The notes under the pieces: model-generated | The model's input: only the letters and a program-made list of their open reading frames with translations | Databases searched by the model: none | Told to the model about the DNA's origin: nothing | Assembly (NCBI RefSeq): GCF_032444005.1 | Contig: NC_091291.1 | Coordinates: 18,476,001-18,540,000, forward strand | DNA: 64,000 nucleotides | Origin: Ranitomeya imitator | Taxonomy: Eukaryota | Direction: 5' to 3' | Part shown: positions 4,666 through 61,983 of the stretch, piece by piece | Layout: each line of letters starts with the position of its first letter | How positions within the stretch are numbered: position 1 is the stretch's first letter | Position numbers and translations under genes: made by a program

Positions 4666-4980
4666 TCAGATGAGTATACAGAAAAAAAGTCCAAACAGAA
4701 AAAAGAGACCCTTGAAATATAAGGCAGCGTCAGTCCTACTGGATGGAGTAAACGGCCAACTACTGAGACCCCCAGAAGACGCTGCCATAGTAGTAGTAGT
4801 AGTAGTTGTTGTTGTTGTTGTTGTGGTTGTTGTTGTTGTCGTCGTAGTTGGGGATGCTGCTTTCCTACACGTTATCGTTCCCGAAATTGAGTATGTGGAA
4901 CAGAAATTGTCAGAAGCGCAGCCAAGTACAGACTCACCTATAAAATAAAGGGGATTAGAATAGTTTGTTAAGTTATGACA

Positions 4981-5025
<45 letters not shown>

Positions 5026-7997
5026 CATCAAACAACATTTTGGAGAGGATTGTAGAGTGTATAAATGTTGAACGGTGATCCGATAGAGGCTACTTCTCAG
5101 ATACCGCCGGTGCCATTTTGCTAGAGGAAAAAAAAATTGTCCTGACCATGATGGTGCCAACGGCGCATGCGCAGTAGCATCTATTGGATGCATCTATCGG
5201 ATCGCACAGCCGGGTGCGCCATTTTGAGAAAGATTTTTTTTTCCAGAATAAATGCACATCCCTAAATAAAATAATTTAATGCATATTATAGATACGATCC
5301 TGACCCCGCCACCTGCCTTGTGAATGTGATTTTTTTGTTCAATACATACTATATTCAGCATGTAAAATAGGGGGCAGGCCAGTGAGGGATCAGTGACCTG
5401 TCATAAGCCATCAGTATGAATGCATAAGCAGAGCATCACATAGAGACTCCGCCTACAGCCCTGCCCACAAACCGCCTACAGCTCCGCCCACAGACCACCA
5501 CAAACATCTCATTAACTGAAAAAAACAGATTAAACAAGAACCACAAGACAGATTTCAACACCAGGTATTATTGTAATCAGTATAACGGCTCCGACCTGAC
5601 GCTGTCTGTAGGTTACTGTCCACAATCCTGCGGACAGGATCCCTTTAAGACACTTCCAAGCAATTGCTAATATTATAATGATTAAGTTTCATCTACCAGA
5701 TAGTGGACATTCCCGTGAGAACTTGAGCCTCCAAATATGACCCCGATAGCATAGACGACTTTTCGATTTCATCGACTTCCAGAACTCTTGTAATTACCTG
5801 AGTTTTCGGTTACATTGAAGCAATTGTTCTGATTTCCTAGACATTGCAGAACTTGCGACGTTTTATTTACTGCAGAATCCAATGAAGGACACTGGAATCC
5901 ATTTGGGGTGACTGCAAAAAGACAAATAAAAATAATAGGTTAAGGGGAATAAACAAGAATTGCAACTTAGTTCCTATAATTACTCCTTCTATGGATTTCT
6001 ATTGAGCTGCGGGTGATTAGCCTAATAAGCAACACCATACGCTCAGATTTAGTTTTTTGTTTTTCTATACATGGTCCCTTTAAAAAAATAACAGACCACA
6101 CTTTGTCCCACAGTTGTCTCCCTACTGATCAGCCATAACCTGTGGTTCTACAAGTGTGACATTTTCCTGCAGCGCCACCACAGGTGAAATGATGCATTAC
6201 GTGTTGGCCACAAAAATCAACACGGAGCAGAGGTAATATCGAAATTTTTTGTTTGCGCGTCCAAACTTTTGACTAGTACTGTACATGCAAAGGAAAACAA
6301 AAATTTTAGGTTCTCATACCAGTTAACCATTAAAAATAGACAAAATGATGACAGCCAAGTGCTTTTCTATTTTTTTCATGAACCCATTTGAAATCGAGTT
6401 TTTACTGCCGAAATCGGCTCAATAACGGACATCGGACTTGTCTCTCCTTTTATTTTTACAGACAATTAAATAACAAAAATTATAGAAATTAATTTAAAAA
6501 AAAACATTCCATGACTATAAGGATAAGTTCATGAAGATTAATTAGCAATGGGATAATAGAAGCGCAAAAGTTACGTAAATAATTTAAATAAAATTCAGAT
6601 TACTTCTATTCTCCCTCCCTTTTTGATCTTTAGGATTATATTCAGTGGCATCTACTTGATGTTAATGTTTGTAATGTTGCCTTGTGTTCTGCTCTATAGC
6701 TATAAAGACGAGTTCCTTAGATGAATAATTTTTGCATTTTTGCACCAATTAGGTAATTTAGGTTACTTGTATTTTTTATAGCAATTTTTATTGTTTGGCT
6801 TTTACATGCATTTTTATTGTGTTCTTTTTGGTATGTGTTGTTTTATATTAAACCGCTTGTTTTGGAGATTTTCTATTTGTTCAGTTATCTTGTTTTATGT
6901 GTTTTACTCGTGGAAAATAGATGAACTGGACATAAGACTAGGGTCACATCCGAAAAAATCGGACTGATTTTAACAATCAATTTCGACTCTGATCATAGCA
7001 TGATCCGATTTTATTGAATGAGGAGAAAAATAAAATTTCTCAACATTCTCCATTCGGTCTGTCCATGAAAGTCAGACCACACTATGATTTTTTTTCCACG
7101 GATCCATAGTCATGGATGATCGATGATTGGACGCAACTCATGAATGCTGCGATTCTTACCTTGGACCGATTTAGTGGGAGGAAAAGATTGGACATGCACA
7201 AGGCCCAATAGACTAACATTGGTCCAGATGTTTGGTCGGAATGCAATCGGACCGAAACTACGGTTGTCTGCCAAATTCTAAGGGTGACACCACTTGTTGA
7301 TGACCACATGAGGCCAAAGGTTTGTCCACCGTGATGGCCATTTAATCATCAACTGTGGCACACCCTATTAGCATAGTGTAAAAGACTGATTGACTTGAAG
7401 GCTAAGGATGAGGGAACCTCTCAAGTCCCCCATTTGTCATCTTCCTAACTTCAGTACTAACGGTATCGAAACGTTAGGGCACAGAAACAAATAAACCTTG
7501 GAGACGTCTGAATGTATATAAAAAATAAAACCAGTATACTTACAGGTAGAGTCTGGTACGATGCAATTGGCATCACTGCAGCAGGAATTCAATATGTCTA
7601 TTTTATCAAATCCAGTCCAAAAGGAGTAGAAGTAGTTACAGTACTGGGGGTTTGCGCACCCTCTGACAATGCTGGCGGAACTTGTACCTAAAAAAGAAAA
7701 ATCACAACTAAACTGGTAATAGTGATAGAATAAATAAAATAAAAGTACCAAAGTAAAACGACTGTCACACTGAAGGCATCAAAACTATGAATTAACACAT
7801 GTGGAATTATATACTTAACAAAAAAGTGTGAAACAACTGAAATTATTTCTTATGTTCTAGGTTCTTCAAAGTAGCCACCTTTTGCTTTGATGTGATAATT
7901 CATAGTTTTGATGCCTTCAGTGTGAATGAACAATTTTCATAGTCCTGAAAATACAGAAAAATCTTTCAATGAGAAGGTGTGTCCAAACTTTTGATCT

Positions 7998-8074
<77 letters not shown>

Positions 8075-11000
8075 GAGCTTCTCACAAGATTAGAGCATCA
8101 TCAAAAAGTTAATTTATTTCAGTTCTTCAATACAAAAAGTGAAACTCATTTAGTATTCATTAGCTGTAAACCATAATCATCAACATTAACAAGTTATTTA
8201 TAGGTTTATTTCAATATTTGGGGACTCCGATAAATATTGTTTTGATTAATTTTGTGTGGGTCTTTTGGTCCATTTTGGTTATGACGTAGTATTAGATTAG
8301 TTTCTCATTTCTCTCAATTAACCTACCAGAATCCCTAGTAATTGACGCATAGCACAATTCTTCGCTTTCACAGGTTGTTTCAGGTCCGGTACATGTAAGG
8401 CTTGTTGCATTAATGCAAGTGGTGCAAACGAGACAATGACCTGCAGGAGGCAGAAAATTAATTATTTTAGTATAAAAGTAATCAAAATGAATGTAATCAC
8501 AGAGAATGGACCGTGCGTGCAAGATAATGCTGTGTTCCGAACAGCTCACAATACCTTTTAGGCCTAAGATCACAGAATGATAATCATATGAGAAGAAAAG
8601 CACAGCTAGGAACCAAAGTACTAAAAATTTAAAAAACTTTATTGAGAAAACAATGAAATCATATAAGAAGGATAACAAAGAAATGACAATGGTAAGCCAA
8701 AGTCATAGGACCACGGTTGGAAACAGGCAAAAAAGAAAGTACAGGCAAGGTAAACATTAATAAACATATTAGTCAGCTCAAAAAGTGCAAGTGCAATGTA
8801 CCACAAAGTGTGCCAATATAAGTAATAGAGATAACCGTATATCCAAGAGTGTGGGCATACTAGCAGTATAAGAGAAATCCCTAGAGGCTAACTGCCACAA
8901 TAGAAGAAAGAGCCCGAGCAATGACCATAGAACTAAAGTACATAAGTGTGCGGCAAATTACCTGAGAGACCATGGTGCCACCCACCCCAACGTGCGTTTC
9001 TGCGTAGTGCCTTCTTGTACCCCACAAGATCTGCTGTATTCTGGCAACACCCCACAAGACCTGCCGTATACATGAAACACTCCACAAGACCTGCCGTATA
9101 CTGGGAACACCCCATAAGACCTATTGTATATCAAGAACACCCCAAAAGACCTGCCGTATACTGGGAACACCCCACAAGACCTGCTGTTTACTGGGAACAC
9201 CCCACAAGACCTGCTGTATACAGGGAACACCCCACAAGACCTGCCGTAAACTGGGAACACCCCACAAAACCTGCCGTATACTGGGAACACCCCACAAGAC
9301 CTGCTGTATACTGGGAATACCCACAAGACCTGCCATATACCGGGAACACCCCACAAGACCTATGGTATACTGGGGACACCCCACAAGGCCTAATGTATAC
9401 AGGGAACACCCCACAAGACCTATGGTATACTGGGAACACCCCACAAGACCCGCTGTATACTGGGAACACCTCCCAAGACCTGCTGTATACAGGGAACACC
9501 CCACAAGACCTGCCGTATACTGGAAACATCCCACAAGACCTGCCGTATACTGGGAACACTCCACAAGACCTGCTGTATACTAGGAACATCGCACAAGACC
9601 TGCCATATACCGGGAACATCCCACAAGACCTGCCGTATACTGGGAACACCCCACAAGACCTGCTGTATACTGGAAACACCCCACAAGACCTGCCGTATAC
9701 TGGGAACACCCCACAAGACCTGCCGTATACTGGGAACACCCCACAAGACCTGCCGTATACTGGGAACACCCCACAAAACCTGCCGTATACTGGGAACACC
9801 CCTCAAGACCTGCTGTATACTGGGAACACCCAACAAGGCCTGCTGTATACAGTGAACACCCCACAAGACCTATGGTATACTGGGAACACCCCACAAGACC
9901 CGCTGTATACTGGGAACACCTCCCAAGACCTGCTGTATATAGGGAACACCCCACAAGACCTGCCGTATACTGGGAACACCCCTCAAGACCTGCTGTATAC
10001 TGGGAATACCTACAAGACCTGCCATATACAGGGAACACCCCACAAGACCTGTGGTATACTGGGAGCACCCCACAAGGCCTGCTGTATACAGTGAACACCC
10101 CACAAGACCTATGGTATACTGGGAACACCCCACAAGACCCGCTGTATACTGGGAACACCTCCCAAGATCTGCTGTATATAGGGAACACCCCACAAGACCT
10201 GCCGTATACTGGGAACACCCCACAAGACCTGCCGTATACTGGGAACACCCCACAAGACCTGCCGTATACTGGGAACACCCCACAAAACCTGCCGTATACT
10301 GGGAACACCCCTCAAGACCTGCTGTATACTGGGAACACCCAACAAGGCCTGCTGTATACAGTGAACACCCCACAAGACCTATGGTATACTGGGAACACCC
10401 CACAAGACCCGCTGTATACTGGGAACACCTCCCAAGACCTGCTGTATATAGGGAACACCCCACAAGACCTGCCGTAAACTGGGAACACCCCTCAAGACCT
10501 GCTGTATACTGGGAATACCTACAAGACCTGCCATATACAGGGAACACCCCACAAGACCTGTGGTATACTGGGAACACCCCACAAGGCCTGCTGTATACAG
10601 TGAACACCCCACAAGACCTATGGTATACTGGGAACACCCCACAAGACCCGCTGTATACTGGGAACACCTCCCAAGACCTGCTGTATATAGGGAACACCCC
10701 ACAAGACCTGCCGTATACTGGGAATACCCCTCAAGACCTGCTGTATACTGGGAATACTTACAAGACCTGCCATATACAGGGAACACCCCACAAGACCTGT
10801 GGTATACTGGGAACACCCCACAAGGCCTGCTGTATACAGTGAACACCCCACAAGACCTATGGTATACTGGGAACACCCCACAAGACCCGCTGTATACTGG
10901 GAACACCTCCCAAGATCTGCTGTATATAGGGAACACCCCACAAGACCTGCCGTATACTGGGAACATCCCACAAGACCTATGGTATACTGGGAACACCCCA

Positions 11001-12123
11001 CAAGACCTGCTGTATACTGGGAATACCCACAAGACCTGCCATATACCGGGAACACCCCACAAGACCTATGGTATACTGGGAACATCCCACAAGGCCTGCT
11101 GTATACAGGGAACACCCCACAAGACCTATGGTATACTTGTAACACGCCACAAGACGTGCTGTATACTGGGAACACCTCCCAAGACCTGCTGTATACAGGG
11201 AACACCCCACAAGACCTATGGTATACTGGGAACACGCCACAAGACCCGCTGTATACTGGGAACACCTCCCAAGACCTGCGGTATACAGGGAAAACCTCAC
11301 AAGACCTGCTATATACTAGGAACATCACACAAGACCTGTCGTATACCGGGAACACCCCACAAAACCTATGGTATACTGGGAACACCCCACAAGGCCTGCT
11401 GTATATAGGGAACACCCCACAAGACCTATGGTATACTGGGAACACCCCACAAGACCCGCTGTATACTGGGAACACCTCCCAAGACCTGCGGTATACAGGG
11501 AACACCCCACAAGACCTGCCGTATACTGGGAACACTCCACAAGACCTGCTGTATACTAGGAACATCACACAAGACCTGTCATATACTGGGAACATCCCAC
11601 AAGACCTGCCGTATACTGGGAACACCCCACAAAACCTGCTGTATACTAGGAACATCACACAAGACCTGCCGTATACCGGGAACACCCCACAAAACCTGCC
11701 ATATATCGGGAACGCTCCACAAGACCTGCCATATACCGGAACACCCCACAAGACCTGCTGTATACTGGAAACACCCCACAAGACCTGCCGTATACAGGGA
11801 ACACCCCACAAGACCTGCCGTATACTGGAAACACCCCACAAGACCTGTCGTATACAGGGAACACTCCACAAGACCTGCCGCATACTGGGAACATTCCAAA
11901 AGACCTGCAGTATACTGGGAACACCCCACAAGACCTGCTGTATACCGGGAACACCCCACAAGACCTGCCGTATATTGGAAACACCCCACAAGAGCTGTTG
12001 TATACAGGGAATATCACACAAGACCTATGTTTTTTCAGAAACAGTTCTGCTTAAATTTGCCTAAAACTTACCACGATGAATTAGGGCCAATACTAGACAG
12101 GAAAATAAAGTAAGGTTGTTCAT
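4666..12123 (-). CDS. Gene A: two-domain Ly6/uPAR (three-finger) protein, PLA2-inhibitor-gamma/PINLYP-like, with poly-Thr stalk and GPI-type C-terminus (231 aa)
   Basis: complement(join(12072-12123, 8327-8440, 7544-7687, 5798-5911, 4666-4937)). All introns are GT-AG phase 1, and 696 nt are in frame. Protein: MNNLTLFSCLVLALIHRG-HCLVCTTC...ELCY...RGCANPQYC...SCCSDANC...NGFQCP...[10 protein letters not shown]...LGCASDNFC...ITC...SP(T)20...[13 protein letters not shown]. Confidence 0.9.
7800..8180. repeat. (TA)n microsatellite (8002-8071) flanked by Tc1-TIR-like remnants, in gene A intron 2
   Basis: About 35 TA units. Flanks GTGTCCAAACTTTTGATCTGTAC and TACAGGAGCTTCTCACAAGATTAG resemble Tc1 terminal sequences. 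Confidence 0.65.
9020..12027. repeat. 30-bp minisatellite, about 100 copies, in gene A intron 1
   Basis: Unit CCCACAAGACCTGCCGTATACTGGGAACAC with variants and occasional 29-bp units. It explains all the overlapping ORFs at 8.9-12.1 kb. Confidence 0.97.
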
Positions 12124-12182
12124 CTTAGCAGCTCACACAGCGCAGTGTTGTGTCCTTCTGCTGTTAGCAAGTCTGGTATGTC

Positions 12183-12189
12183 TTTTATA
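12183..12189 (-). promoter_or_regulatory. TATA box of gene A
   Basis: TATAAAA on the minus strand, about 60 nt upstream of the ATG at 12123. The same motif sits at the same distance in gene B. Confidence 0.75.
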
Positions 12190-13551: not shown

Positions 13552-13654
13552 GAGTACTCCTGGGGACCCACCACACCCGACGCACGTTTCACACTGAAAT
13601 GCTTCGTCCAAGTGCGAAACGCGCGTCGGGTGTGGTGGGTCCCCAGGAATACTC
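13552..13654. repeat. Near-perfect inverted repeat (39-bp arms), Penelope-like terminal sequence
   Basis: Arms 13552-13590 and 13616-13654 match at 37/39 with a 25-nt spacer. Each arm carries GAAACG[C/T]GCGTCGG. Confidence 0.7.
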
Positions 13655-17085: not shown

Positions 17086-18718
17086 CAGTTAGGTCCATAT
17101 ATATTTGGACAGAGACAGCATTTTTCTAATTTTGGTTATAGACATTACCACAATGAATTTTAAACAAAACAATTCAGATGCAGTTGAAGTTCAGACTTTC
17201 AGCTTTCATTTGAGGGTATCCACATTAAAATTGGATGAAGGGTTTAGGATTTTCAGCTCCCTAACATGTGCCACCCTGTTTTTAAAAGGACCAAAAGTAA
17301 TTGGACAGATTCAATAATTTTTAAATAAAATGTTCATTTTTAGTAGTTGGTTGAAAACTCTTTGTTGGTAATGACTGCCTGAAGTCTTGAACTCATGGAC
17401 ATCACCAGACGCTGTGTTTCCTCCTTTTTGATGCTCGGCCAGGCCTTCACTGCGGTGGTTTTCAGTTGCTGTTTGTTTCTGGGCCTTTCTGTCTGAAGTT
17501 TAGTCTTTAACAAGTGAAATGCTGCTCAATTGGGTTGAGATCAGGTGACTGACTTGGCCATTCAAAAATATTCCACTTCTTTGCTTTAATAAACTCCTGG
17601 GTTTCTTTGGCTTTATGTTTTGGATCATTGTCCATCTGTAGTATGAAACGACGACCAATCAGTTTTGCTGCATTTGGCTGGATCTGAGCACACAGTATGG
17701 CGGCTCTGAAGACCTCAGAATTCATTCGACTGCTCCTGTCCTGTGTCACATCATCAATAAACACTAGTGACCCAGTGCCACTGGCAGCCATGCATGCCCG
17801 CGCCATCACACTGCCTCCGCCATGTTTTACAGATGATGTGGTATGCGTTGGACCATGAGCTGGACCGCGCCTTCACCATACCTTTCTCTCTCCATCATTC
17901 TGGTAGAGGTTGATCTTGGTTCCATCTGTCCATAGAATGTTCTTCCAGAACTGTGCGGCTTTTTTAGATGTTGTTTAGCCTTTTTGTTCTTGATGCTTAT
18001 GAGTGGCTGCACCATGCAGTGAACCCTCTGTAGTTACTTTCATGCAGTCTTCTCTTTATGGTAGATTTGGATATTGATCCGCCGACCTCCTGGAGAGTGT
18101 TGGTCACTTGGTCGGCTGTTGTGAAGGGGTTTCTCTTCACCATGGAGATTATTCTGCGATCATCCACCACTGTTGTCTTCCGTGGGCGCCCAGGTCTTTT
18201 TGCATTGATGAGTTCACCAGTGCTTTCTTTCTTTTTCAGGATGTACCAAACTGTAGATTTTGCCACTCCTAATATTGTAGCAATTTCTCGGAAGGGTTTT
18301 TTCTGTTTTTGCAGCTTAAGGATGGCTTGTTTCACCTGCATGGAGAGCTCCTTTACCGCATGTTTACTTCACAGCAAAACCTTCCAAATGCAAGCACCAC
18401 ACCTCAAATCAACTCCAGGCCTTTTATCTGCTTAATTGAGAATGACATAATGAAGAGATTGCCCACACCTGTCCATGAAATAGCCTTGGAGTCAATTGTC
18501 CAATTACTTTTGGTCCCTTTAAAAACAGGGTGGCACATGTTAAGGAGCTGAAACTCCTAAACCCTTCATCCAATTTTAATGTGGATACCCTCAAATGAAA
18601 GCTGAAAGTCTGAACTTCAACTGCATCTGAATTGTTTTGCTTAAAATTCATTGTGGTAATGACTATAACCAAAATTAGAAAAATGTTGTCTCTGCCCAAA
18701 TATATATGGACCTAACTG
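17086..18718 (-). mobile_element. Full-length Tc1 transposon with long TIRs and a frameshifted transposase
   Basis: TA-CAGTTAGGTCCATATATATTTGG...CCAAATATATATGGACCTAACTG-TA, with TIRs of about 220 bp. The transposase is split over ORFs 17997-18341, 17827-18015 and 17507-17809 ([26 protein letters not shown]). Confidence 0.95.
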
Positions 18719-18924: not shown

Positions 18925-19742
18925 TAGTAACATAGTAACATAGTAACATAGTAACATAGTTAGTAAGGCCGAAAAAAGACATTTGTCCATCCAGTTCAGC
19001 CTATATTCCATCATAATAAATACCCAGATCTACGTCCTTCTACAGAACCTAATAATTGTATGATACAATATTGTTCTGCTCCAGGAAGACATCCAGGCCT
19101 CTCTTGAACCCCTCGACTGAGTTCGCCATCACCACCTCCTCAGGCAAGCAATTCCAGATTCTCACTGCCCTAACAGTAAAGAATCCTCTTCTATGTTGGT
19201 GGAAAAACCTTCTCTCCTCCAGACGCAAAGAATGCCCCCTTGTGCCCGTCACCTTCCTTGGTATAAACAGATCCTCAGCGAGATATTTGTATTGTCCCCT
19301 TATATACTTATACATGGTTATTAGATCGCCCCTCAGTCGTCTTTTTTCTAGACTAAATAATCCTAATTTCGCTAATCTATCTGGGTATTGTAGTTCTCCC
19401 ATCCCCTTTATTAATTTTGTTGCCCTCCTTTGTACTCTCTCTAGTTCCATTATATCCTTCCTGAGCACCGGTGCCCAAAACTGGACACAGTACTCCATGT
19501 GCGGTCTAACTAGGGATTTGTACAGAGGCAGTATAATGCTCTCATCATGTGTATCCAGACCTCTTTTAATGCACCCCATGATCCTGTTTGCCTTGGCAGC
19601 TGCTGCCTGGCACTGGCTGCTCCAGGTAAGTTTATCATTAACTAGGATCCCCAAGTCCTTCTCCCTGTCAGATTTACCCAGTGGTTTCCCGTTCAGTGTC
19701 TAATGGTGATATTGATTCCCTCTTCCCATGTGTATAACCTTA
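18925..19742 (-). mobile_element. 5'-truncated CR1 LINE (RT C-terminus plus 3' tail)
   Basis: ORF 19049-19654 has CR1 ORF2 motifs (LYKSLVRPHMEYCVQFWAP, LEKRRLRGDLITMYKY, FFTVRAVRIWNCLP). The 3' end is four copies of an 8-bp tail repeat (TAGTAACA on +). Confidence 0.93.
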
Positions 19743-25949: not shown

Positions 25950-26238
25950 TCAGATGCATATACATAAAAAAAGTCCAAACAGAAAAAAGAGACCCTTAAA
26001 ATATATGGCAGCGTCAGTTCTACTGGATGGAGGAAACGGCCAATTTCTCAGCCCCTTAGAAGAGACTGCCGTAGAAATATCAGTAGTAGTAGTTGTTGTA
26101 GGAGATGATGTTGCATTCACACAGCTTATCACTTCTATATCTGATTTGTTCATGGAACAGACATAGTCGTTTGCACAACCAAGCACAAACTTAAAATCTC
26201 CTGGGGAAAAAAAATTAAAAAATAAAATATATTGCTAT

Positions 26239-26276
<38 letters not shown>

Positions 26277-33217: not shown

Positions 33218-33277
33218 CTTTGCAGCTAAAACAGCACAGTGCTGGGTCCTTCTTGCTGATGGGAAACCTGGCATGTC

Positions 33278-33284
33278 TTTTATA
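33278..33284 (-). promoter_or_regulatory. TATA box of gene B
   Basis: TATAAAA on the minus strand, 60 nt upstream of the ATG at 33217, in a context conserved with gene A (GCATGTCTTTTATACTGTAGACT on +). Confidence 0.75.
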
Positions 33285-33512: not shown

Positions 33513-33557
<45 letters not shown>

Positions 33558-43464: not shown

Positions 43465-43688
43465 NNNNNNNNNNNNNNNNNNNNNNNNNNNNNNNNNNNN
43501 NNNNNNNNNNNNNNNNNNNNNNNNNNNNNNNNNNNNNNNNNNNNNNNNNNNNNNNNNNNNNNNNNNNNNNNNNNNNNNNNNNNNNNNNNNNNNNNNNNNN
43601 NNNNNNNNNNNNNNNNNNNNNNNNNNNNNNNNNNNNNNNNNNNNNNNNNNNNNNNNNNNNNNNNNNNNNNNNNNNNNNNNNNNNNNNN
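43465..43688. other. Assembly gap (224 N)
   Basis: Run of N. Confidence 1.
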
Positions 43689-43840: not shown

Positions 43841-44993
43841 TCAGTTAGAATTGGGGGTTTCCACTGTTTCGGCACATCAGGGGCTCTCCAAACACGACAT
43901 GGCGTCCGATCTCAATTCCAGCCAATTCTGCGTTGAAAAAGTAAAACAGTGCTCCTTCCCTTCCGAGCTCTCCTGTGTGCCCAAACAGGGGTTTACCCCA
44001 ACATATGGGGTATCAGCGTACTCAGGACAAATTGGACAACAACTTTTGTGGACCAAAATCTCCTGTTACCCTTGGGAAAATACAAAACTGGGGGCTAAAA
44101 AATAATTTTTGTGGGAAAACAAAAGGATTTTTTATTTTCACGGCTCTGCGTTATAAACTGTAGTGAAACACTTGGGGGTTCAAAGTTCTCACAACACATC
44201 TAGATAAGTTCATTGAGGGGTCTAGTTTCCAATATGGGGTCACTTGTGGGGGGTTTCTACTGTTTAGGTACATTAGGGGCTCTGCAAACGCAATGTGACG
44301 CCTGCAGACCAATCCATCTAAGTCTGCATTCCAAATGATGCTCCTTCCCTTCCGAGCCCTCCCATGCGCCCAAACGGTGGTTCCCGCCCACATATCGGGT
44401 ATCAGCGTACTCAGGACAAATTGGACAACAACATTTAGGGTCCAATTTCTCCTGCTAACCTTGGAAAAATACAAAACTGGGGGCTAAAATATAATTTTTG
44501 TGGAAAAAAAAATATTTTTTATTTGCATGGCTCTGCGTTATAAACTGTAGTGAAATACTTGGGGGTTCAAAGCTCTCACAACACATCAAGATGAGTTCCT
44601 TAGGGGGTCTACTTTCCAAAATGGTGTCACTTGTGGGGGGTTTCTACTGTTTAGGTACATTAGGGGCTCTGCAAACGCAATGTGACGCCTGCAGACCATT
44701 CCATCTAAGTCTGCATTCCAAATGGCGCTCCTTCCCTTCCGAACCCTCCCATGCGCCCAAACGGTGGTTCCCCCCCACATATGGGGTATCAGCGTACTCA
44801 GGACAAATTGGACAACAACTTTTGGGGTCCAATTTCTCCTGTTACCCTAGGGAAAATACAAAACTGGGGGCTAAAAAATAATTTTTGTGGGAAAAAAATT
44901 TTGTTTTATTTTTATGGCTCTGCATTATAAACTTCTGTGAAGCCCTTGGTGGGTCAAAGTGCTCACCACACATCCAGATAAGTTCCTTAGGGG

Positions 44994-46657
44994 CAGGGCC
45001 GGCTCCAGGTTTTTGAGGGCCCCGGGCGAACGAGTCTCAGTGGGCCCCCCAACCCCCCCTTTAACACATTTATACCACGATTCATGATGCACAGATAAGA
45101 TATAACGCACAGCCGGTGAGTCTGTGACGCAGTATATAACACACAGCCGCGAGCCCACACAGTATATAACACACAGCCCACTAGTATATATATGTGCACA
45201 GATGTGACTTTCAGTTCACGATTTAAATCTGTTACAAAAAAAAACAAAAAATGAAAGCTGCAGACTGTACGAGTATCACAGGTGGCTGAATACATTAGAT
45301 TCACATTTACTTAGTCATAATAGGTCAAATCAGGCTGACCATGTAATATGTATGGATGCCTTTCCATTTGCTCCCAACTTATGATGTTGGGGAAGAGAAG
45401 AATCGGACATGTTGAATTTTAATGTGTGATCCTTTTGTTCTCCTAGAAGATACACATTTGGCAGAAGTGTCTAGCAGCAGGAGCATACTCCTTTATCCTG
45501 AGTGTGCATGTGTATGCAGTGGTTGGGAGAGCTGGAGCAGATATGCATAGTCTTCAAGTTCCCCCACAGTTATTCATTACTACAGCCCCTGCCTGTACTT
45601 AGTTACATGGTCAATACTGAACTGCCTGAGGAGCTTTTCCGTCTCACACATTTGGGTGGCCAGTGACTTCTGCTCATCTATATCGCAATTCCTTATTTTT
45701 CCTCATCTTTTAACCTCACCGAAGACGATTCACTGACAGTCACGACGACACACTCATAATCAGTGCAGGGTAATAATCAGTGCAGGGTAACAATCAGTGC
45801 AGGGTAATAATTAGTGCCATGTCTTATGTCTAGTAACAATCAGTGCAGGGTAACAATCAGTGCAGGGTAACAATCAGTGCAGGGTAATAATCAGTGCAGG
45901 GTAATAATCAGTGCAGGGTAATAATCAGTGCAGGGTAATAATCAGTGCAGGGTAATAATCAGTGCAGGGTAATAATCAGTGCAGGGTAATAATCAGTGCA
46001 GGGTAATAATTAGTGCCATGTCTTATGTCTAGTAACAATCAGTGCAGGGTAACAATCAGTGCAGGGTAATAATCAGTGCTATAGTAGTCATCAGTGCTGA
46101 CTCACTGCTTCGCCGGCCCCCTCGTTGTGGACACAGCAGGAGAGGAGAGGGTGCACTGTCCTCACCTCACTGCAGGCTGCAGCTGCTGCTCCTGAGTCCT
46201 GCCGGTCCGGATCTGTCCTCTCCTGTGCTGGCCTGGATTATCTGGATGGTGGACGCATAGATTCTGACTGCCTGGAATGGGAAGAGGGAAGGCTTCAGCG
46301 GCGCGGTCCAACTCCGAACGGCTCTCTCTGTCTCTGTCCTCTCCTTGCCCGCCGACCGGATGTACTGACAGGAGAAGAGATGACCCAGCATCGCGACCCG
46401 GAAGTGTCTTCTGTATCCATGGTGACGGCCGGCAGAGGTGAGTATTGCTGCTATTGCAGCTGCGCAGCGCCAGGCGCCAGCGAAATGGCCTCAGACACAG
46501 CTGACTGTGCCCCCTGCAGCCAAGGCGCCGCCAGGCGACGTGTGGACAGTGGATGGATGTAGCGAGTGACGCGCGCTGGCGGCTGACGTGTGGGCCCCCC
46601 CGTCTTGCCAGGGCCCCGGCATTTGCCCGGGTGCGCCGGGTGCTGACGCCGGCCCTG
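44994..46657. mobile_element. Non-autonomous hAT-like element nested in the tandem array
   Basis: TIR CAGGGCCGGC/GCCGGCCCTG, 8-bp TSD CTTAGGGG (44986-44993 and 46658-46665), and an internal 17-bp tandem repeat AATCAGTGCAGGGTAAT (about 45765-46080). Confidence 0.88.
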
Positions 46658-48510
46658 CTTAGGGGGTCTACTTTCCAAAATGGTGTCACTTGTGGGGGGT
46701 TTCAATGTTTAGGCACATCAGTGGCTCTCCAAACGCAACATGGCGTCCCATCTCAATTCCTGTCAATTTTGCATTGAAAAGTCAAACGGCGCTCCTTCCC
46801 TTCCGAGCTCTCCCATGAGCCCAAACAGTGGTTTACTGCCACATATGGGGTATCAGCGCACTCGGGACAAATTGGACAACAACTTTTGAGGTCCAATTTC
46901 TTCTCTTACCCTTGGAAAAATAAAAAATTGGGGGCAAAAATATAATTTTTGTGAAAAAATATGATTTTTTATTTTTACGGTTCTGCATTATAAACTTCTG
47001 TGAAGCACTTGGTGGGTCAAAGTGCTCACCACACCTCTAGATAAGTTCCTTAGGGGGTCTACTTTCCAAAATGGTGTCACTTGTGGGGGGTTTCAATGTT
47101 TAGGCACATCAGTGGCTCTCCAAACGCAACATGGCGTCCCATCTCAATTTCTGTCAATTTTGCATTGAAAAGTCAAACTGCGCTCCTTCCCTTCCCAGCT
47201 CTCCCATGCGCCCAAACAGTGGTTTACTGCCACATATGGGGTATCAGCGTACTCAGGACAAATTGGACAACAACTTTTGAGGTCCAATTTCTTCTCTTAC
47301 CCTTGGAAAAATAAAAAATTGGGGGCAAAAATATAATTTTTGTGAAAAAATATGATTTTTTATTTTTACGGTTCTGCATTATAAACTTCTGTGAAGCACT
47401 TGGTGGGTCAAAGTGCTCACCACACATCCAGATAAGTTCCTTAGGGGGTCTACTTTCCAAAATGGTGTCACTTGTGGGGGGTTTCAATGTTTAGGCACAT
47501 CAGTGGCTCTCCAAACGCAACATGGCGTCCCATCTCAATTCCTGTCAATTTTGCATTGAAAAGTCAAATAGCGCTCCTTCCCTTCCGAGCTCTCCCATGC
47601 GCCCAAACAGTGGTTTACTGCCACATATGGGGTATCAGCGTACTCAGGACAAATTGGACAACAACTTTTTGGGTCCAATTTCTCCTGTTACCCTTGGTAA
47701 AATAAAACAAATTGGAGCTGAAGTAAATTTTTTGTGGAAAAAAGTTAAATGTTCATTTTTATTTAAACATTCCAAAAATTCCTATTAAACACCTGAAGGG
47801 TTAATAAACTTCTTGAATGTGGTTTTGAGCACCTTGAGGGGTGCAGTTTTTAGAATGGTGTCACACTTGGGCATTTTCTATCATATAGACCCCTCAAAAT
47901 GACTTCAAATGAGACGTGGTCCCTAAAAAAAAATGGTGTTGTAAAAATGAGAAATTGCTGGTCAACTTTTAACCCTTATAACTCCCTAACAAAAAAAAAA
48001 ATTGGTTCCAAAATTATGCTGATGTAAAGGAGACATGTGGGAAATGTTACTTATTAAGTATTTTGTGTGACATATCTCTGTGATTTAATTGCATAAAAAT
48101 TCAAAGTTTGAAAATTGCGAAATTTTCAAAATTTTCGCCAAATTTCCGTTTTTTTCACAAATAAACGCAGGTACTATCAAAGAAATTTTACCACTATCAT
48201 GAAGTACAATATGTCACGAGAAAACAATGTCAGAATCACCAGGATCCGTTGAAGCGTTTCGGAGTTATAACCTCATAAAGGGACAGTGGTCAGAATTGTA
48301 AAAATTGGCCTGGTCATTAACGTGCAAACCACCCTTGGGGGTAAAGGGGTTAATATGTAAATTTAAAAATTAATAATTTGCTTTATATTTCATTGCAATA
48401 TTAAATGAATGGAAGATTTACAAATAATAAATCAGGAAAAGTAAAAAAATAAATCTAACAGTCTCAAATAAAAAAAAAAAATCAAAATTATTTTTTTCTC
48501 CAAAAACTAA

Positions 48511-48516
48511 TTTATT
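48511..48516 (-). promoter_or_regulatory. Candidate polyadenylation signal of gene C
   Basis: AATAAA on the minus strand, about 52 nt after the tentative stop at 48569. Confidence 0.4.
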
Positions 48517-48568
48517 TTTCACACTGGAACATATCTGTGAAGATCTTCATTATCTCCCCTTCAGGTCT

Positions 48569-48740
48569 TCAATTTTTGCCCTCGTTGTTCTGTAAAAAAA
48601 GACAAAAATAATAAAATATAGTAATGTCCAAAAAGTAACGTAAGATCATGAACTAATTGGAAACGGAAAAAAAAGTGGCTGTAGCAGAGCTATTTTATAA
48701 GTATTTAATTGCCATCCATATAACATATTTATAAGTATGT

Positions 48741-48784
<44 letters not shown>

Positions 48785-49053
48785 AATATCTGCATGATAG
48801 CAGTACTAATAATAGTTTGATCATACATTTATTTTTAACTATTATTTATATTATAATAATTTTATATAATACTTCAACTAACAATAATAATACGTATTAT
48901 TATTATTAAATTTAGTTTACTATTATTATTATTATTATCTATATAATAATAGTTCAAGCATACATTTATTTTACATTTTTATTTAATATATTAATAAGTA
49001 TGACATTTTATAAGTATTTAATTGCCATCCATATAACATATTTATAAGTATGT

Positions 49054-49096
<43 letters not shown>

Positions 49097-49555
49097 CTGC
49101 ATAATAGCAGTACTAATAATAGTTTGATCATACATTTATTTTTAACTATTATTTATGTTATAATAATTTTATATAATACTACTTCTACTACTAACAACAA
49201 CGATAATAATAATTATTATTACATTTAATTTATTATTATTATCATCTATATAATAATAGTTCAATCATACATTTATTTTACATTTTTATTTAATATATTA
49301 AGAAATATGTTATTTTATAAGTATTTAATTAGCACCCATATAACATATTTATAAGTGTATTTTTATTATTATTGCTATTATTATTATTATTATTTTATAT
49401 TACTCTGTACATCATATTAGTTCTGGTTTTCAACCCTCCCCCACCCTTCAGATTTGATTGTGCAGCATTGATTTTTTTTTTTCATGTGTTGGAATATTAA
49501 ACCTTAACTGAAGGTATCAAAACCTATAAAAGTAACAGGTTTATGCCCAAATTTA

Positions 49556-49592
<37 letters not shown>

Positions 49593-52500
49593 CTTCATAA
49601 TAATAGTTTGATCATTCATTTATTTTAATTTGTAAATAAATATTCAATTTTTTACTATTTTTCTTACTGCATATGATACAAATTAATGCCAAATTTGCCA
49701 CCACTAAATCCCTATCATTAAAAGTTGTGAAATTTCTATGAAAAGTTACGTCTCGATATAGAGATTTACTTACAATTTATCTTAGTCAATTATATTAGTG
49801 CTCGTTAGAAATTGTTAGATGACAAACAGAACTTTTCCACATTTATTTGTTCTTAGAGCTCTTGAAAAACCTGTTGGGTCACTGCTCGGAGTTCATCATT
49901 TTTTGGGAGGACACATTTGTAATTCCAGAAGGAATCGATGTTTCCTTAGGCATGAAGAATCACAATGAGTCTAATGTACGTGATATAGGTGGTTTTGTGC
50001 CACTGCCTCCAGTAATAAAAAAATAAGGAAATTATAGGGACGAAAACCTTTCTGACATTGGATAAAAAGATTCCTTCAAGATGAAAAATAGCAAAAACAT
50101 CTAAATTATTTCAATTATTTATATTTGAAATGGCAACTTTAATATATGGAAGCATAAAACTGCCTTGTAAATTTTTTATCTCATCGTTTATTAGTTATAT
50201 AAACATATCCTAAGTAAGTCCAACTGAGAAATTGGGAGAGGTTAAAGAGAATGTACAACCGTAATGCATGAACTAATCTGCCCTCTTGATTCTAAGTGTT
50301 GATAAACAGGATCTACATCCAGAATAAAAACACTTCGTACATGTCTAGCATTTAGCGTTGCCCAATTTTTTTTTTTTTTAGTTGCAGTACCATATCTGAC
50401 CACAGGGTGTACCATAACTTAGCAAGCGCTACAGCACACCCTGTGGTCGCGATTAGTATTGCAATCATAAAAATTTGTTGGAGTGAGAAATAATTTAACT
50501 GAAGGACTAAAATAAATTGTGTTCAGAGACAAATAGTGATAGAGCAGAATGGAATTTACAGAATAAAGGAGGATCTGTTATAATGAATAATAACTATAGA
50601 ATGGCCAATTACAAAAAATCCACCCAAAACTAGTGGGATTATATTTAAAAATAAAAAAAGGAACACAAAAAGCGGAGAATCATAGAATCATAGAAGGTTA
50701 GAGTTGGAAGGGACCCCAAGGGTCATCGTGTTCATTCCCCTGCTCAATGCAGGATTCACTAAACCATCCCAGACAGATGTCTGTCCAACCTCTGCTTGAA
50801 GACTTCCATTGAAGGAGGAGTCACCACCTCCTGTGGCCTGTTCCAAACGCTGTATACTTGAATAAATGAATTACCGTATATACTTGAGTACAAGACAAGT
50901 TTTTCAGCACTTTTTTGTGTGCTGAGAACGCTCCTCTCTGCTTATAATCAGGTAAGGGTCTCAGAAGATGGAGGGGAAGCGGCAGCGGCAGAGCAGTGGG
51001 TCACCGGAGGCAGGAGCCGGCTGCTGTGCTGGCAGTGAGTATTCATTTCAGTAGTCGCAGCTGCTGGCTTCCTACAGCGGCCTGGCAATCACGTGTGCCT
51101 GCTACTTAAGAGAAATTAATATTAATTTCTCTGCACTCATGTGATCGCCAGGCAGCTGCAGGAAGTTGGCGGCTGCGGCTGACACTGTGCACGCTACAAA
51201 ATAACAATGAATACTTACTGCTCTCCACGCACATAGTCCTGGTATAGCGAGCAGTATGTGTTCTGTTAGCTGAGCTCTGCTTGTAAGCAGTGCATGACGT
51301 CATTGTCACGCGCTGCTTACAAGCATAAATCCGCTGCTTGCACCGGAACAAGATGCTGCGAGGGAACGTAGAGACGGTAAGTAGGAAGGTTAATTTTTTT
51401 AAATGTTTTTTGATGGGGGCCATGCATACTTAAGACTCACCAAGGCATTACTGCATTCAATGCTTATCTTCATTTTCTCAGTGGTGCTTGTTGTGGCATG
51501 GCCATCGTAGTTTGAGCACATGTTTTCGGTGGCACATCCTGCCATGGCCAAGATTGGTTCTGAAGGGTCTAAAAAGAAAGCACAAAGAAATTTAATATTT
51601 ACATTTCATGCGTATAAATTTCTGTAAGGAGAACCTGTCAGCAGGATTTTACTACATAAGGTACAAACATGGTCATATTGGATGCGAGTAAGCATGAGCC
51701 AACCGCAGTACTCTTTTATTGGAGACCTAATGCAAATTGTTATATTATTTGAGAAAAACTCAGTTCCACTCAAATACAGTGATGAGCAAAAAGATAACAG
51801 GTAGCAATATTTTGATCTTCTGACTTTCAGGCTCCATATCTCACCATCCACTTCTTCTTTGATCGTGAGACCACCATTATTTTATAAACAATCATCTTGG
51901 ATATCTCATACATAAATTTGACTTGCCCCTATTTACCATATGATTAGTTATGCATATTATTGTCATGTCACTGCATTGTTACTGTTTTGTTCCTTAAGAT
52001 CTAAATTTTAATTTTTATTATTTTGTTAGTATTTTGGAAGTCCACCTTTGGCTTTCACCACTGCCTGAATCCTTCTGGGCAGCTTTCAATCAGATTCAAT
52101 CATTTCTCGACTGAAATCTGATCCCAGATCTTCTACACGTTCCTAAAGTTGGTGCACACTGGTCGCCTCACTTGGGTCTGTGTACGGCTCTTTCTTCAAC
52201 TCTACCTACAAGTGTTGGATTGGGTTTAGGTCTGGGGACTGCAAGGACAATCCAGAACCTTTACTTCATTGTCATGGAACCGTTTCATCGCCAATGTCAA
52301 CATATTCTTTGGGTCATTGTCCTGCTGGAACACAATATAGTCCTTTTCATACCCATAGTACTTGAGTGTGCAAAGTAACTCATCGGATACTCACATATAG
52401 AACAGCATTGAGACCATCATCTACCCTGGTCAGGAATCCAACGCCTTTAGCTGTGAAACAACCCCATATCATCAGGCTTTCTAAACCTAACTTGACAGGT

Positions 52501-55500
52501 CCTTCAATTTCTCGATCCATTAGACCCTTTTTCCCTTGTTTCTTCCAGACCCATTTGCACCCATCAGAGCCTAGTCTATTGACTTTCATCTCATTGCTCG
52601 AAATCACCAGTTTCCGATCTTCTACGGCAGGGGTCCCCAACTCCAGTCCTCAAGGCCCACCAACAGGTCATGTTTTCAGGATTTCCTTTGCATTGCACAG
52701 GTGATGCAATTATTACCTGGGCAAGACTAAGGAAATCCTGAAAACATGACATGTTGGTGGGCCTTGAGGACTGGAGTTGAGGACCCCTGTTCTACGGTAC
52801 ACTTTTTGCACTTTTTTGCAAACTCAAGCTTAAATTTAAATTTTCTTATGCCGATATTGAAGTTGAGACTTCTTCACCTTTTTTCAGGCCACCATTCCAG
52901 ACTTGTGTAGCGTGCGTCACATGATGCTTGTAAGGACATTTGTGATCTCACTATTATGAAGCATACGAGTCACCTCCGCTGCCGTGTTTGTCACTGCAGA
53001 ACTGATAGACCTTACAATGAGCCAACTTGTTGCCTTCGATATTTTGCCTGGACTTCCACCTCTTGGCTTTTGAATGGACGGACTTCATTTCGTATCCTTC
53101 CAGCTGTGATGGCGCTCACATGATGCAGCTTGGCAATTTTCTTGGCCGATAGACCGCTATCGATGAGCTGGATAGTGTGTTTCTCTTCTCTTGGGAAATC
53201 TTTTTCATGGCTGCTCCTCGATGTAATACCACATATGACCACTGGATTTGCTGTTTTTAGAAAGTGTTCGTATCACTTTTGTTAGTACTTACCAGTGGCA
53301 GTGCTGATTGAGTATGAAGTGCACCGGTTTTCCGTTCCAGTGCACTGAATTTGGTTATCTGGTTTACATGTTGAAGATGTTATCGTAAAACAAGAAGGGC
53401 AAGCCAGACCATTTGAATCCTTTTTTTCAGATAATACTAAAATGAGAGTGAAAATATAGAGATGAATCAATTTTGTTATTTAAATATTAACTATAAAATT
53501 ACAAAGATATTAAATTGTATCGTATAAAATTAATACAAGTACTGGATTAATAATTTTGAAAAAAATGTGAAATACCTATTGGTGCAGTCGGGGTACATTC
53601 ATCAGTTTGGCAGCAGAGAGTATTTAGATCTATGGAAATAAACTGATTACTCAGACTCTTCGGATTATTGCAGTCGGGCGACTGTCCACATCCTCGCACA
53701 TGGGAGTAAGTTGATAGTCCCAACATGGTCACTAAAGAAAATAAAAGTTTTCTTATACATTAATACAAAAATGTCTCAATTTTCTAATTATAACTTCCAA
53801 CTTTCTGTAAGAAGTTCAATAAATAAAATAAAAATAAAAAGAAAGAGTGATAGAAGAGAGTGAGAGAAGAAGGAAAAAAGAGTAAAAGAAGGGAAACTAA
53901 AAAGAAAAGGGAAGGAAAGGAAAGGAAAGGAAAGGGGAGGGAATGGGTAGGAAGAAAATGATAGGGAAGTAATGGAAGGGAAAATAAAGGGAAAAGAAGG
54001 GAATGAAAAAGAAATATGGAATGAAAAGAATTGAAGAAAATTAAATTAAAAGGAAAGGACATGTAAGAAAATGGTAGGATACAAATGAAAAATAGAGGAA
54101 AGGAAATAATAGACAAGAAGGAAAGTCAAAGGGAAGACACTGATAATGATGGAATTCAAAGTTAGGAAAGGGAAGTAAAGGAAATGAATGAAGGAAAGGA
54201 TAGGAAAGAAAAGGAAAGGAAAGGAGAGGAAAGGAAAGGGAGAATGCTAGGAAGATAATAGGGAAGGGATGGAAAGGAAATAAGGGAATTAAATGGGGAA
54301 GAAGGGAAGGAAAATAATTAATTAAAGTTAGGAGAAAAGGAAAGGATAGCAAAGAAAATGAAAGGAAAGGATAGGAAAGGANNNNNNNNNNNNNNNNNNN
54401 NNNNNNNNNNNNNNNNNNNNNNNNNNNNNNNNNNNNNNNNNNNNNNNNNNNNNNNNNNNNNNNNNNNNNNNNNNNNNNNNNNNNNNNNNNNNNNNNNNNN
54501 NNNNNNNNNNNNNNNNNNNNNNNNNNNNNNNNNNNNNNNAAAGGATAGGACAGAAAAGGAAAAGAAAGGAAAGATAAGGAAGGGAAATGAAAAGAAAGGA
54601 AAGCAAAGGAAAGGGAGAAGGCTAGGAAGATAATAGGGAAGGGATAGAAAGGAAATAAGGAAACTAAATGGGGAAGAAGGGAAGGAAATTATTAATAAAA
54701 GTTAGGAGAAAAGGAAAGGAAGCCTAATGGGTATTACAAAAGGAATTGAAAAGGAAGAATTGATAATATAAAGATAGCAGAAAAAGAAAGAAAAGAAATG
54801 GCAAAAAAGTAGAAATAGACAAGGGATGGAAAGAGATACATTTAAAAAAAGGAGAAGGGGATTAGCAAGAAAAAGATTTACATTAAATTGAGTGGAATAC
54901 AAAAAGATGGATTAGAGAGAACATAGAGCAAACAGATAGGAAAGAGAAGGGGAAGCAGAAAGATCAATAACATGGGAGAGGATAAGAAGAAGGGGGAAAT
55001 CAAAAGAGAGGAGAAGGGAAGTAAGGAGACAGAGGAGGATTGAAAGGAAACATAAAGAGATTCCAAGGAGTGCAGGAGCAAAAAATGACAGAGCAAGAAG
55101 AGGAGGAGAAAGTAAAATGTGTGCATAAGAGAAGAGAACAGAGTTAAATGTGCGAGGGATAACAAAAAGAAGAGGAAAAGTTAAAAGAAGGCAATTGGGG
55201 GAGAAGGGAAGAAGAAAGGGAAATGAGATGACAAGGAAGAAAAAGAGAAAGGGGAAAAAGATAGAAAGAGAGAAGAATAGAGAGAGAAAGAAAGAAAATG
55301 TGAGAACAATGAGGAGAATAAAATAATATCACATGGAATTCAGAGAGATAAATACGGAACAAAATCAGGAAGTATCTCATGTACATTCCCAGTAGGAGTA
55401 GTGGTCCTGTGTGACCAATCACGTAGGAGTTGAATACAAGATGCATGACTCGCACTTTTGGTTTCGGTGTAGACGGAGGTGCAGGCGTCTTCGTTGGCCG

Positions 55501-55572
55501 CACATGTGACTGCAGTCCCAGTGCATGGAGCCTGATCTGCGCCGGTACAACTTATACACGAGAGAGAATAGC
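48569..55572 (-). CDS. Gene C (5'-partial): two-domain Ly6/uPAR protein, 10+8 Cys, PINLYP/PLI-gamma/SPF-like, probably secreted
   Basis: complement(join(55456-55572, 53576-53731, 53293-53436, 51441-51568, tentative 48569-48589)). Protein: GYSLSCISC...DAC...RGCGQSPDC...LCCQTDECTPTAP...NGLACPSC...STC...IQCTGTENRC...AGCATENMC...IECSNAL(NNEGKN*). The signal exon was not found, and the last exon and the exon-2 donor are less certain. Confidence 0.82.
48693..49640. repeat. AT-rich ~310-bp triplication containing (ATT)n runs
   Basis: TTTTATAAGTATTTAATT...CATATAACATATTTATAAGT recurs at about 48693, 49006 and 49313. Confidence 0.75.
50676..50845 (-). mobile_element. CR1 LINE 3'-end remnant
   Basis: AGAATCATAGAATCATAGAA tail plus GGAAGGGACC...GGTCATC and ACTCACCACCTCC-like CR1 3' motifs. 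Confidence 0.7.
52040..53250 (-). mobile_element. Degenerate Tc1-like transposon in gene C intron 4
   Basis: Fragments IQLIDSGLSAKKIAKLHHVS (HTH-like) and KVNRLGSDGCKWVWKK...SLMIWGCFTAKGVG. Boundaries are approximate. Confidence 0.7.
52628..52789. mobile_element. hAT MITE (162 bp) nested in the Tc1 relic
   Basis: Long TIR CAGGGGTCCCCAACTCCAGTCCTCAAGG..., and 8-bp TSD TTCTACGG (52620-52627 and 52790-52797). Confidence 0.92.
53820..55330 (+). repeat. Purine-rich (GA/GGAAA) low-complexity tract in gene C intron 2; contains a 158-N gap at 54382-54539
   Basis: The + strand is almost entirely A/G, with AAAGG repeats. Confidence 0.9.
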
Positions 55573-61981: not shown

Positions 61982-61983
61982 AT

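Follow-up and report, generated by a model that had tools for sequence, protein, structure and literature searches.

Organization of the locus

The window analysed here is a stretch of 64,000 nucleotides (nt) from chromosome 10 (18476001-18540000) of the poison frog Ranitomeya imitator. It contains three tandem genes, named A, B and C, which lie co-oriented on the minus strand and encode two-domain proteins of the Ly6/uPAR (LU, three-finger) type. C belongs to a conserved frog orthogroup, and A and B form a divergent, membrane-tailed pair that may have arisen from that same orthogroup by tandem duplication.

A prediction made from the letters of the window without database searches (the sequence-only reading) had placed three such genes here. 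Its minus-strand exons of A, B and C are all present with canonical AG/GT borders, and the sixth exon of C, a mini-exon at 48569-48589, was missed. The predicted phase-1 GT-AG chains with LU-type cysteine patterns are confirmed by the spliced models of B and C, which match RefSeq proteins, and the signal exons of A and B each consist of a 17-codon signal peptide with a phase-1 donor, about 60 nt past a TATA box. A tblastn comparison of family proteins with the window returned 14 exon intervals, exactly those of A, B and C, and nothing further.

Each of the three genes carries two LU units, and each unit is split across two exons. A and B have three internal coding exons of 114, 144 and 114 nt, and the corresponding lengths in C are 117, 156 and 144 nt; all of these are divisible by 3, and each of the exons concerned begins and ends in phase 1. 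The proposed PLI-gamma/PINLYP/SPF-like kind is upheld by the RefSeq names of C and its orthologues ('phospholipase A2 inhibitor NAI-like', 'gamma subunit B-like', 'PINLYP-like') and by the score of C, which lies above the Pfam UPAR_LY6 threshold. The description of the cluster as hidden, or as an undescribed system, is not supported: B and C are already RefSeq proteins, and only A is without annotation.

Gene A

12182-12189, minus strand: TATA box TATAAAAG, with the ATG about 60 nt further downstream
12072-12123, minus strand: coding part of exon 1, with the ATG at 12123 and a signal peptide of 17 codons followed by one base; phase 1, donor GTAAGT
9019-12026, unstranded: minisatellite of intron 1, 30 bp in about 100 copies with 84% matches; non-coding, most of the intron
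8327-8440, minus strand: exon 2, first half of LU domain 1, 6 Cys including an extra Cys at mature residue 2
7544-7687, minus strand: exon 3, second half of LU domain 1, 5 Cys, motif CCSDANC
5798-5911, minus strand: exon 4, first half of LU domain 2, 3 Cys, with the loop-1 disulfide pair lost
4666-4937, minus strand: exon 5, second half of LU domain 2 (3 Cys), 20-Thr stalk and hydrophobic C-terminal tail

The reading frame of A is open over 231 codons, ending at a stop codon at 4666-4668 within exon 5, and all of its splice sites are canonical. A has a promoter block in common with B: about 420 nt containing the TATA box of A show 78-79% identity to the region upstream of B. At the protein level, A is 57% identical to B. 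The minisatellite of intron 1 also yields long spurious open reading frames (ORFs) on both strands, with repeats of the PTRPAVYWEH type.

Gene B

33277-33284, minus strand: TATA box, in the upstream block shared with A
33166-33217, minus strand: coding part of exon 1, signal peptide of 17 codons; phase-1 GTAAGT donor
31921-31942, minus strand: alternative first exon (RefSeq isoform X2), MALKQDPG, donor GTGAGT; without signal peptide
31567-31680, minus strand: exon 2, first half of LU domain 1
29874-30017, minus strand: exon 3, second half of LU domain 1
27961-28074, minus strand: exon 4, first half of LU domain 2
25950-26200, minus strand: exon 5, second half of LU domain 2, short Thr stalk and hydrophobic tail; stop at 25950-25952

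Two RefSeq transcript models exist for B (XP_069597550.1 and XP_069597551.1). The spliced model is identical residue for residue to the first of them, an 'uncharacterized protein isoform X1', and a poly(A) signal lies at about 25861. RefSeq starts X1 at an in-frame ATG 19 codons upstream of the signal peptide (33218-33274), a start codon that looks misplaced, too far upstream. When the last exon of B was used as a phmmer query against 1.84 billion representative proteins, the only real match was a 233-amino-acid (aa) protein of Ranitomeya variabilis, whose 90% cluster also includes two R. imitator RefSeq proteins. A 986-aa protein consisting of 14 tandem 70-residue repeats was also returned for the stalk and tail (expectation value, E, 2e-13), and it was set aside as spurious, a sum of weak repeat matches; it probably represents translated satellite sequence unrelated to B.

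Gene C

55456-55572, minus strand: exon 2, first half of LU domain 1, 5 Cys
53576-53731, minus strand: exon 3, second half of LU domain 1, 5 Cys
53293-53436, minus strand: exon 4, first half of LU domain 2, 5 Cys
51441-51568, minus strand: exon 5, second half of LU domain 2, 3 Cys; ends at an internal phase-0 GTGAGT donor
48569-48589, minus strand: exon 6, mini-exon of 21 nt, NNEGKN plus stop

The spliced model of C, together with the six residues of the mini-exon, is identical to XP_069597500.1, 'phospholipase A2 inhibitor NAI-like'. The internal GTGAGT donor lies at 51440, and an AATAAA signal follows about 53 nt downstream of the mini-exon. C has 10+8 Cys in its two domains and scores 47.8 bits over two stretches against Pfam UPAR_LY6 (PF00021, cut-off 24.8), its single exons reaching 18.5-20.9 bits each. 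In the 5.96-Gb R. imitator assembly, C is single-copy.

RefSeq starts C at an ATG in the polypyrimidine tract before exon 2 (55573-55603, MSCYCSECFSG), which gives a model without signal peptide, and the Dendrobates and Anomaloglossus models of the orthologue likewise start in the preceding intron. This start codon looks misplaced. A regular signal exon is present in the orthologues of R. variabilis and Phyllobates terribilis, and in R. variabilis the gene extends over 48 kb. A retrotransposon lies upstream of exon 2, within the expected intron 1.

Indirect evidence compatible with transcription of C comes from Logan assemblies, which are contig sets built from public sequencing runs. For a 439-nt stretch of C, in which exons account for about 59% of the 31-mers, a share of 0.56-0.65 of the words was present in 14 small assemblies from 4 studies, which fits spliced RNA.

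Two assembly gaps fall between or within these genes:

54382-54539, unstranded: assembly gap in C intron 2; no coding residues missing across it
43465-43688, unstranded: assembly gap in the B-C spacer; repeat-rich, intergenic

The first gap is surrounded by CT-rich low-complexity sequence. The junction of C exons 2 and 3 (...TETK|MTMLG...) matches that of the orthologues in four other species, none of the residues being missing, and the gap therefore hides no coding exon. The second lies in a satellite-rich spacer between the promoter of B and the 3' end of C and falls in no cluster gene. Both gaps spare the coding sequence.

The C orthogroup and its two isoforms

Relatives of C were recovered with a profile seeded from its exons, and the best-match cluster contains XP_069597500.1. 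Alignment of single exons onto the full-length protein with MAFFT misplaced the exons; it served to recruit candidates by shared words and was not used for inference. Identity of C to its orthologues is 88% in Dendrobates, 86% in Phyllobates, 79% in Anomaloglossus, 67% in Hyla and Dendropsophus, 61% in Bufo, 56% in Mixophyes, 54% in Pyxicephalus and 50% in Spea. By sequence, C is placed as R. imitator's one orthologue of a conserved anuran two-domain LU gene, inside the dendrobatoid subclade. The sequence-only reading had suggested a lineage-specific expansion. This applies to A and B only, but not to C, which is single-copy with orthologues across Anura (50-88% identity). It had also held that one-to-one orthology with well-characterised, conserved genes would speak against novelty; C has clear anuran orthologues, though the gene is conserved rather than well characterised, and its novelty is therefore reduced on that reasoning.

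In two other frogs, the orthologue of C is annotated with two products. In Dendropsophus ebraccatus, isoform X1 has 297 aa and X2 has 208 aa; in Pyxicephalus adspersus, the corresponding lengths are 331 and 204 aa. Long and short forms are identical up to ...NAT or ...KAT, just past the last Cys. After this point, the short isoform adds a few basic residues and stops, whereas the long one reads VSP and continues with a stretch of about 90-130 residues in which Ser, Thr and Pro abound, and then with a terminal hydrophobic segment. Long forms are also found in Hyla sarda, Bufo gargarizans, Leptodactylus fuscus and Spea bombifrons.

The GTGAGT that R. imitator C uses as its short-form donor corresponds to the Val-Ser of the long isoform. 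Read-through of this donor meets a stop after 14 codons in R. imitator, so C can therefore make only the short product; in Anomaloglossus, read-through stops after four codons. No locus resembling the ancestral stalk and tail was found in the R. imitator genome (best E 1.76).

An open segment of C intron 5 (50422-50577, minus strand) bears a faint resemblance to the distal stalk of the Hyla and Leptodactylus long isoforms (...TPT.F...C.C), and it meets a stop where the hydrophobic tail should start. The segment may be a relic of a lost anchored isoform, but the similarity is too weak to claim this (E 0.18-1.3).

Shared features of A and B

The proteins of A and B (224-231 aa) have the same order of parts: the signal peptide comes first, followed by an LU1 of 11 Cys and an LU2 of 6 Cys, then by a Thr run and a hydrophobic C-terminus. 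The extra Cys of LU1 stands at mature residue 2, where C-like proteins carry Ser. LU1 retains the full Cys skeleton ending in CC-x4-C (CCSDANC in A, CCSDGDC in B, CCQTDEC in C), and the terminal CC...C has no counterpart in LU2 of any of the three genes. LU2 of A and B has lost the loop-1 pair, and its finger 3 is shorter by 9 residues. The N-A-T site in B is followed directly by the Thr run, whose length is 6 Thr in B, against 20 in A. A conserved stretch then leads to YFK, 14 hydrophobic residues and a stop. At the position homologous to the internal donor of C, neither A nor B has a GT.

Between A and B, the nonsynonymous rate (dN) is 0.26, the synonymous rate (dS) 0.47 and their ratio 0.57, and every Cys is kept. 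Exactly two genes of this type are present in the R. imitator genome. Identity to the R. variabilis orthologue is 94.9% for B and 94.1% for C, so the acceleration of A and B was historical and B is now under ordinary constraint. The last few tail residues of B differ between R. imitator and R. variabilis through a frameshift in a T run, a change that would be tolerable if the tail is a cleaved glycosylphosphatidylinositol (GPI) signal.

Origin of A and B

The best explanation of these data begins with an ancestral frog gene that would have made two products from one locus: a long, anchored product with a GPI-like signal, through read-through of GTGAGT as Val-Ser, and a short secreted product, through splicing at that site to the mini-exon. 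A tandem duplication within the C orthogroup, followed by a burst of sequence change, would have given rise to A and B, which would have lost the internal donor and retained only the anchored architecture. C would have kept the short secreted product and lost the stalk and tail. In other words, C is taken as the conserved orthologue in its short form, and A and B as anchored-form paralogues from the same orthogroup, the products of A and B most likely being surface-bound binding proteins and that of C a soluble one.

As a whole, this explanation is given a probability of roughly 0.6. Its structural and identity part is near certain. The more specific idea that the isoforms were partitioned between the duplicates, with rapid change of A and B afterwards (a new free Cys, one disulfide lost, a finger shortened), is tentative and stands somewhat below even odds.

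Support for a common origin comes from sequence comparison and from the tree. In BLASTP, B shows about 30% identity to C-like proteins over most of its length, the Spea protein ranking first (34% identity across 231 aa; E 5e-20, small database), and the Cys skeletons of A/B and of the C group line up in the alignment. A and B group with the C-like proteins against an outgroup formed by gene Z, a two-domain LU gene just outside the window, and a Bufo PINLYP-like protein; the support is 100/100, with and without Spea. The branch of A and B measures 2.0-2.3 changes per site, and all other branches 0.6 or less. According to the tree, the split between A and B predates that between R. imitator and R. 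variabilis. Judged by the annotated proteins, A and B constitute a fast-evolved, membrane-tailed subfamily confined to Ranitomeya, which is modestly new.

A number of results weigh against the explanation favoured here. The long branch of A and B attracts Spea, and an origin within dendrobatoids only is neither supported nor rejected (approximately unbiased test, p 0.099). No A/B-like proteins are annotated in Dendrobates, Phyllobates or Anomaloglossus, and annotated relatives occur only in Ranitomeya; this absence fits poorly with a duplication as old as a dS of 0.47 suggests, unless the genes are unannotated there, as A is here. The predicted GPI anchoring of A and B is drawn from a terminal hydrophobic stretch without cytoplasmic tail, and the spacer is short. 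B has no Pfam match at E<=1, hence it lies below the UPAR_LY6 threshold, and its R. variabilis orthologue reaches 19.4 bits (cut-off 24.8); the label 'uncharacterized' follows from B passing no Pfam threshold. A sequence search of solved structures returned no relatives of B, and AlphaFold2 models of B were unusable, with a mean predicted local distance difference test (pLDDT) score of 33.9 from a 2-row alignment and 36.1 from 13 rows, too low to allow a fold search.

For C, the point of weakness is the signal exon. Neither scans for an ATG, a hydrophobic stretch and a phase-1 donor nor tblastn queries with the signal peptides of R. variabilis and P. terribilis revealed it in the window or in the 60 kb past the high-coordinate end, on the upstream side of C. 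That C is secreted is therefore judged from the orthologues of these two species. For A, no counterpart was found among annotated proteins in a word-based search with B and a family-profile search (5.8-billion-cluster protein collection, in which B and its R. variabilis orthologue are present), and these searches would have picked up a 57%-identical protein. In contigs of four runs, whose RNA origin is guessed and which cannot show absence, the exons and splice joints of A were not covered, only the repeats in introns 2 and 4 (7696-8311 and 5078-5693).

The findings on A lend themselves to another view, in which A is a silent or decaying duplicate, a young pseudogene with an open frame, and only B and C are working genes. 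Besides the missing protein and the contigs confined to intronic repeats, the expansion of a microsatellite to 20 Thr and the 3-kb minisatellite of intron 1 would suit such decay. The frame of 231 codons, the canonical splice sites, and the TATA box and promoter block conserved with B are, however, features of an intact gene; all 17 extracellular Cys are common to A and B, and the dN/dS of 0.57 is not close to 1. Additionally, annotation often misses tissue-restricted genes, and contigs of this kind cannot prove absence. A silent A is thus considered rather unlikely.

Another objection concerns the placement of A and B itself. They could be an old, separate two-domain LU lineage beside C, drawn into the C-like group by a long-branch artefact, in which case the isoform partition would be wrong. 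The identity of A and B to each C-like protein is about 30%, when C-like proteins are at least 50% identical to one another; the tree tool warned that the long branches of A/B and Spea meet; the dS between A and B is already 0.47; and the 11+6 Cys of the pair are unlike the 10+8 of C. Set against this are the full support for grouping A and B with the C-like proteins whether Spea is in or out, exon sizes and phases common to A/B and the C group, and the tandem adjacency of the three genes. Moreover, the ...C-x-N-A-T site runs straight into the Ser/Thr stalk within one exon, and the tail is preceded by an aromatic-Phe-Lys motif, YFK in A and B, with similar HFK and RF in the Hyla and Bufo long isoforms. 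A separate lineage is therefore judged unlikely, and derivation from the C orthogroup is preferred.

Function and significance

Regarding function, the explanation stands at about even odds. The products of A and B are predicted to be heavily glycosylated, GPI-anchored binding proteins of the cell surface, and C would be a soluble binding protein of the same lineage. Glycosylation, anchoring and binding are all inferred.

If the isoform partition holds, the locus would be a compact natural experiment in which an anchored/secreted splice pair became separate genes and the anchored copy then evolved fast. It would provide a clear-cut case, in vertebrates, of splice isoforms divided among duplicates, with a burst of change in a poison-frog cell-surface binding protein following the partition. 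For annotation, one unannotated intact paralogue (A) is added, and two RefSeq models are corrected, concerning the signal exon of C and the X1 start of B. The label 'PLA2 inhibitor' on the frog gene C stems from similarity only. Overall, the window covers part of a multigene family that is already known, and two-thirds of this part had been annotated before; it does not point to a new kind of system, and the analysis gives no link to toxin handling in poison frogs.

Neighbouring LU genes and repeats

The window is part of a larger LU gene cluster on R. imitator chromosome 10. A count of three genes is correct inside it, but the array runs on, with the co-oriented gene Z below and LU exons on both sides. 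LU exons are scattered over chromosome 10:18.09-18.70 Mb and are denser over 24.0-25.1 Mb. Gene Z (chromosome 10:18467700-18472812, minus strand) lies 3-8 kb below the first base of the window and is a fourth co-oriented two-domain LU gene. It has four phase-1 exons, three of them measuring 117, 150 and 144 nt and the last carrying a short GPI-type tail. It is the orthologue of the Bufo bufo 'PINLYP-like' protein used in the tree.

Further LU exons were observed on the plus strand at chromosome 10:18457437-18461036. Past the high-coordinate end, a plus-strand LU gene at 18549727-18552129 shows a signal plus LU1a exon and an LU2a exon, and a minus-strand LU exon lies within 18584496-18592779, with a candidate signal exon, MKTYLTLFFIALIGA, and phase-1 GTGAGT at 18592779. 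This last candidate was considered for C and set aside, being more likely part of another minus-strand LU gene.

Repeats occupy much of the remaining sequence. Beside the gap in the B-C spacer, 387-391-bp satellite arrays lie at 43950-44993 and 46658-47707 (2.7 copies each, 89-97% matches). A 17-bp array occupies 45756-46079, and an AT-rich one with a 307-bp unit lies at 48692-49407. Around the gap in C intron 2, CT-rich, strand-skewed low-complexity sequence extends over 53784-55500 (GC skew 0.45) and contains long Phe/Leu/Ser/Pro ORFs. Transposon remains between or beside the genes (17507-18341, 28210-28470, 35544-36562, 19049-19654 and 57332-62385) include Tc1/mariner-like transposase fragments, a reverse-transcriptase fragment of a non-long-terminal-repeat (non-LTR) element and a retrotransposon.

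Comparison with known systems

The closest known system is the anuran orthogroup annotated as PLI-gamma B-like, NAI-like or PINLYP-like, of which C is the R. imitator member, with the same 10+8 Cys skeleton, internal donor and mini-exon. Members include XP_069597500.1 (R. imitator), XP_077113423.1 (R. variabilis), XP_073425965.1 (D. tinctorius), XP_056399898.1 (Hyla sarda), and XP_069803821.1 and XP_069803822.1 (Dendropsophus ebraccatus). Ranitomeya and the other dendrobatoids encode only the short form. A and B match the architecture of the long isoform, yet they are only about 30% identical to the group and differ by the extra N-terminal Cys, the lost LU2 loop-1 disulfide and the 9-residue deletion in finger 3. 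The nearest relative of B itself is LOC143768664 of R. variabilis (XP_077113422.1), its orthologue with 95% identity, whose accession directly precedes that of the C orthologue.

Gamma-type phospholipase A2 (PLA2) inhibitors of snake serum (PF02988) consist of two tandem three-finger units, are secreted and are the origin of the RefSeq names. The sequence-only reading had proposed that the frog products might neutralise PLA2 or other toxins, and had named mucosal or skin defence and chemical signalling as further options. Apart from the names of C and its orthologues, a weak match of C to Pfam PLA2_inh speaks for this (19.4 bits, 17.9 for exon 2 alone; 18.9 for the R. variabilis orthologue). 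That score is below the cut-off of 22, the UPAR_LY6 score is far higher (47.8), and no match was found in A, in B or in the Hyla, Bufo and Spea relatives. RefSeq names follow best similarity only, and SPF transcripts carry this label too (PMC4757389). The best solved relative of the C-like profile is uPAR (PLAUR) domains 2-3 (PDB 3laq, 2i9b; E 3.8e-9, uPAR residues 90-264), and among solved structures only uPAR and CD59 were matched. Neutralisation of PLA2 or other toxins by these frog proteins is considered improbable. With uPAR, the genes described here have in common tandem LU domains, a GPI anchor (predicted for A and B) and the exon logic of the superfamily; uPAR differs by its three LU domains and by the lack of a Ser/Thr stalk.

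The sodefrin precursor-like factors (SPFs), pheromones of amphibians, also have two LU domains. Frogs, dendrobatids among them, have many well-described two-domain three-finger proteins of SPF or PLA2-inhibitor-like type (PMC11659521, PMC12617036). Their Cys classes are alpha (8+6), beta (10+8), gamma (10-12+8) and sigma (11+9) (PMC11659521). The 11+6 pattern of A and B fits none of these, and the pair carry a membrane tail. C could be thought of as a courtship pheromone of the beta class: it shares the 10+8 count of beta (and gamma) SPFs, it is probably secreted and measures about 20 kDa, and the SPF family is expressed in dendrobatid glands, beta-clade members in male finger glands (PMC12617036). 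SPFs are, however, multi-copy, purely secreted and fast-evolving under positive selection (PMC11659521), whereas C is single-copy and conserved across Anura, and its orthologues also make a membrane-tailed isoform. Better SPF candidates are the many secreted two-domain genes at 24-25 Mb of the same chromosome, and a pheromone role for C is regarded as very doubtful.

LYPD3, also known as C4.4A, combines two LU domains with a Ser/Thr/Pro-rich region and a GPI anchor. The same architecture, with a predicted GPI signal, is seen in A and B and in the anuran long isoform; the likeness is architectural only, and A and B, at 224-231 aa, are much shorter.

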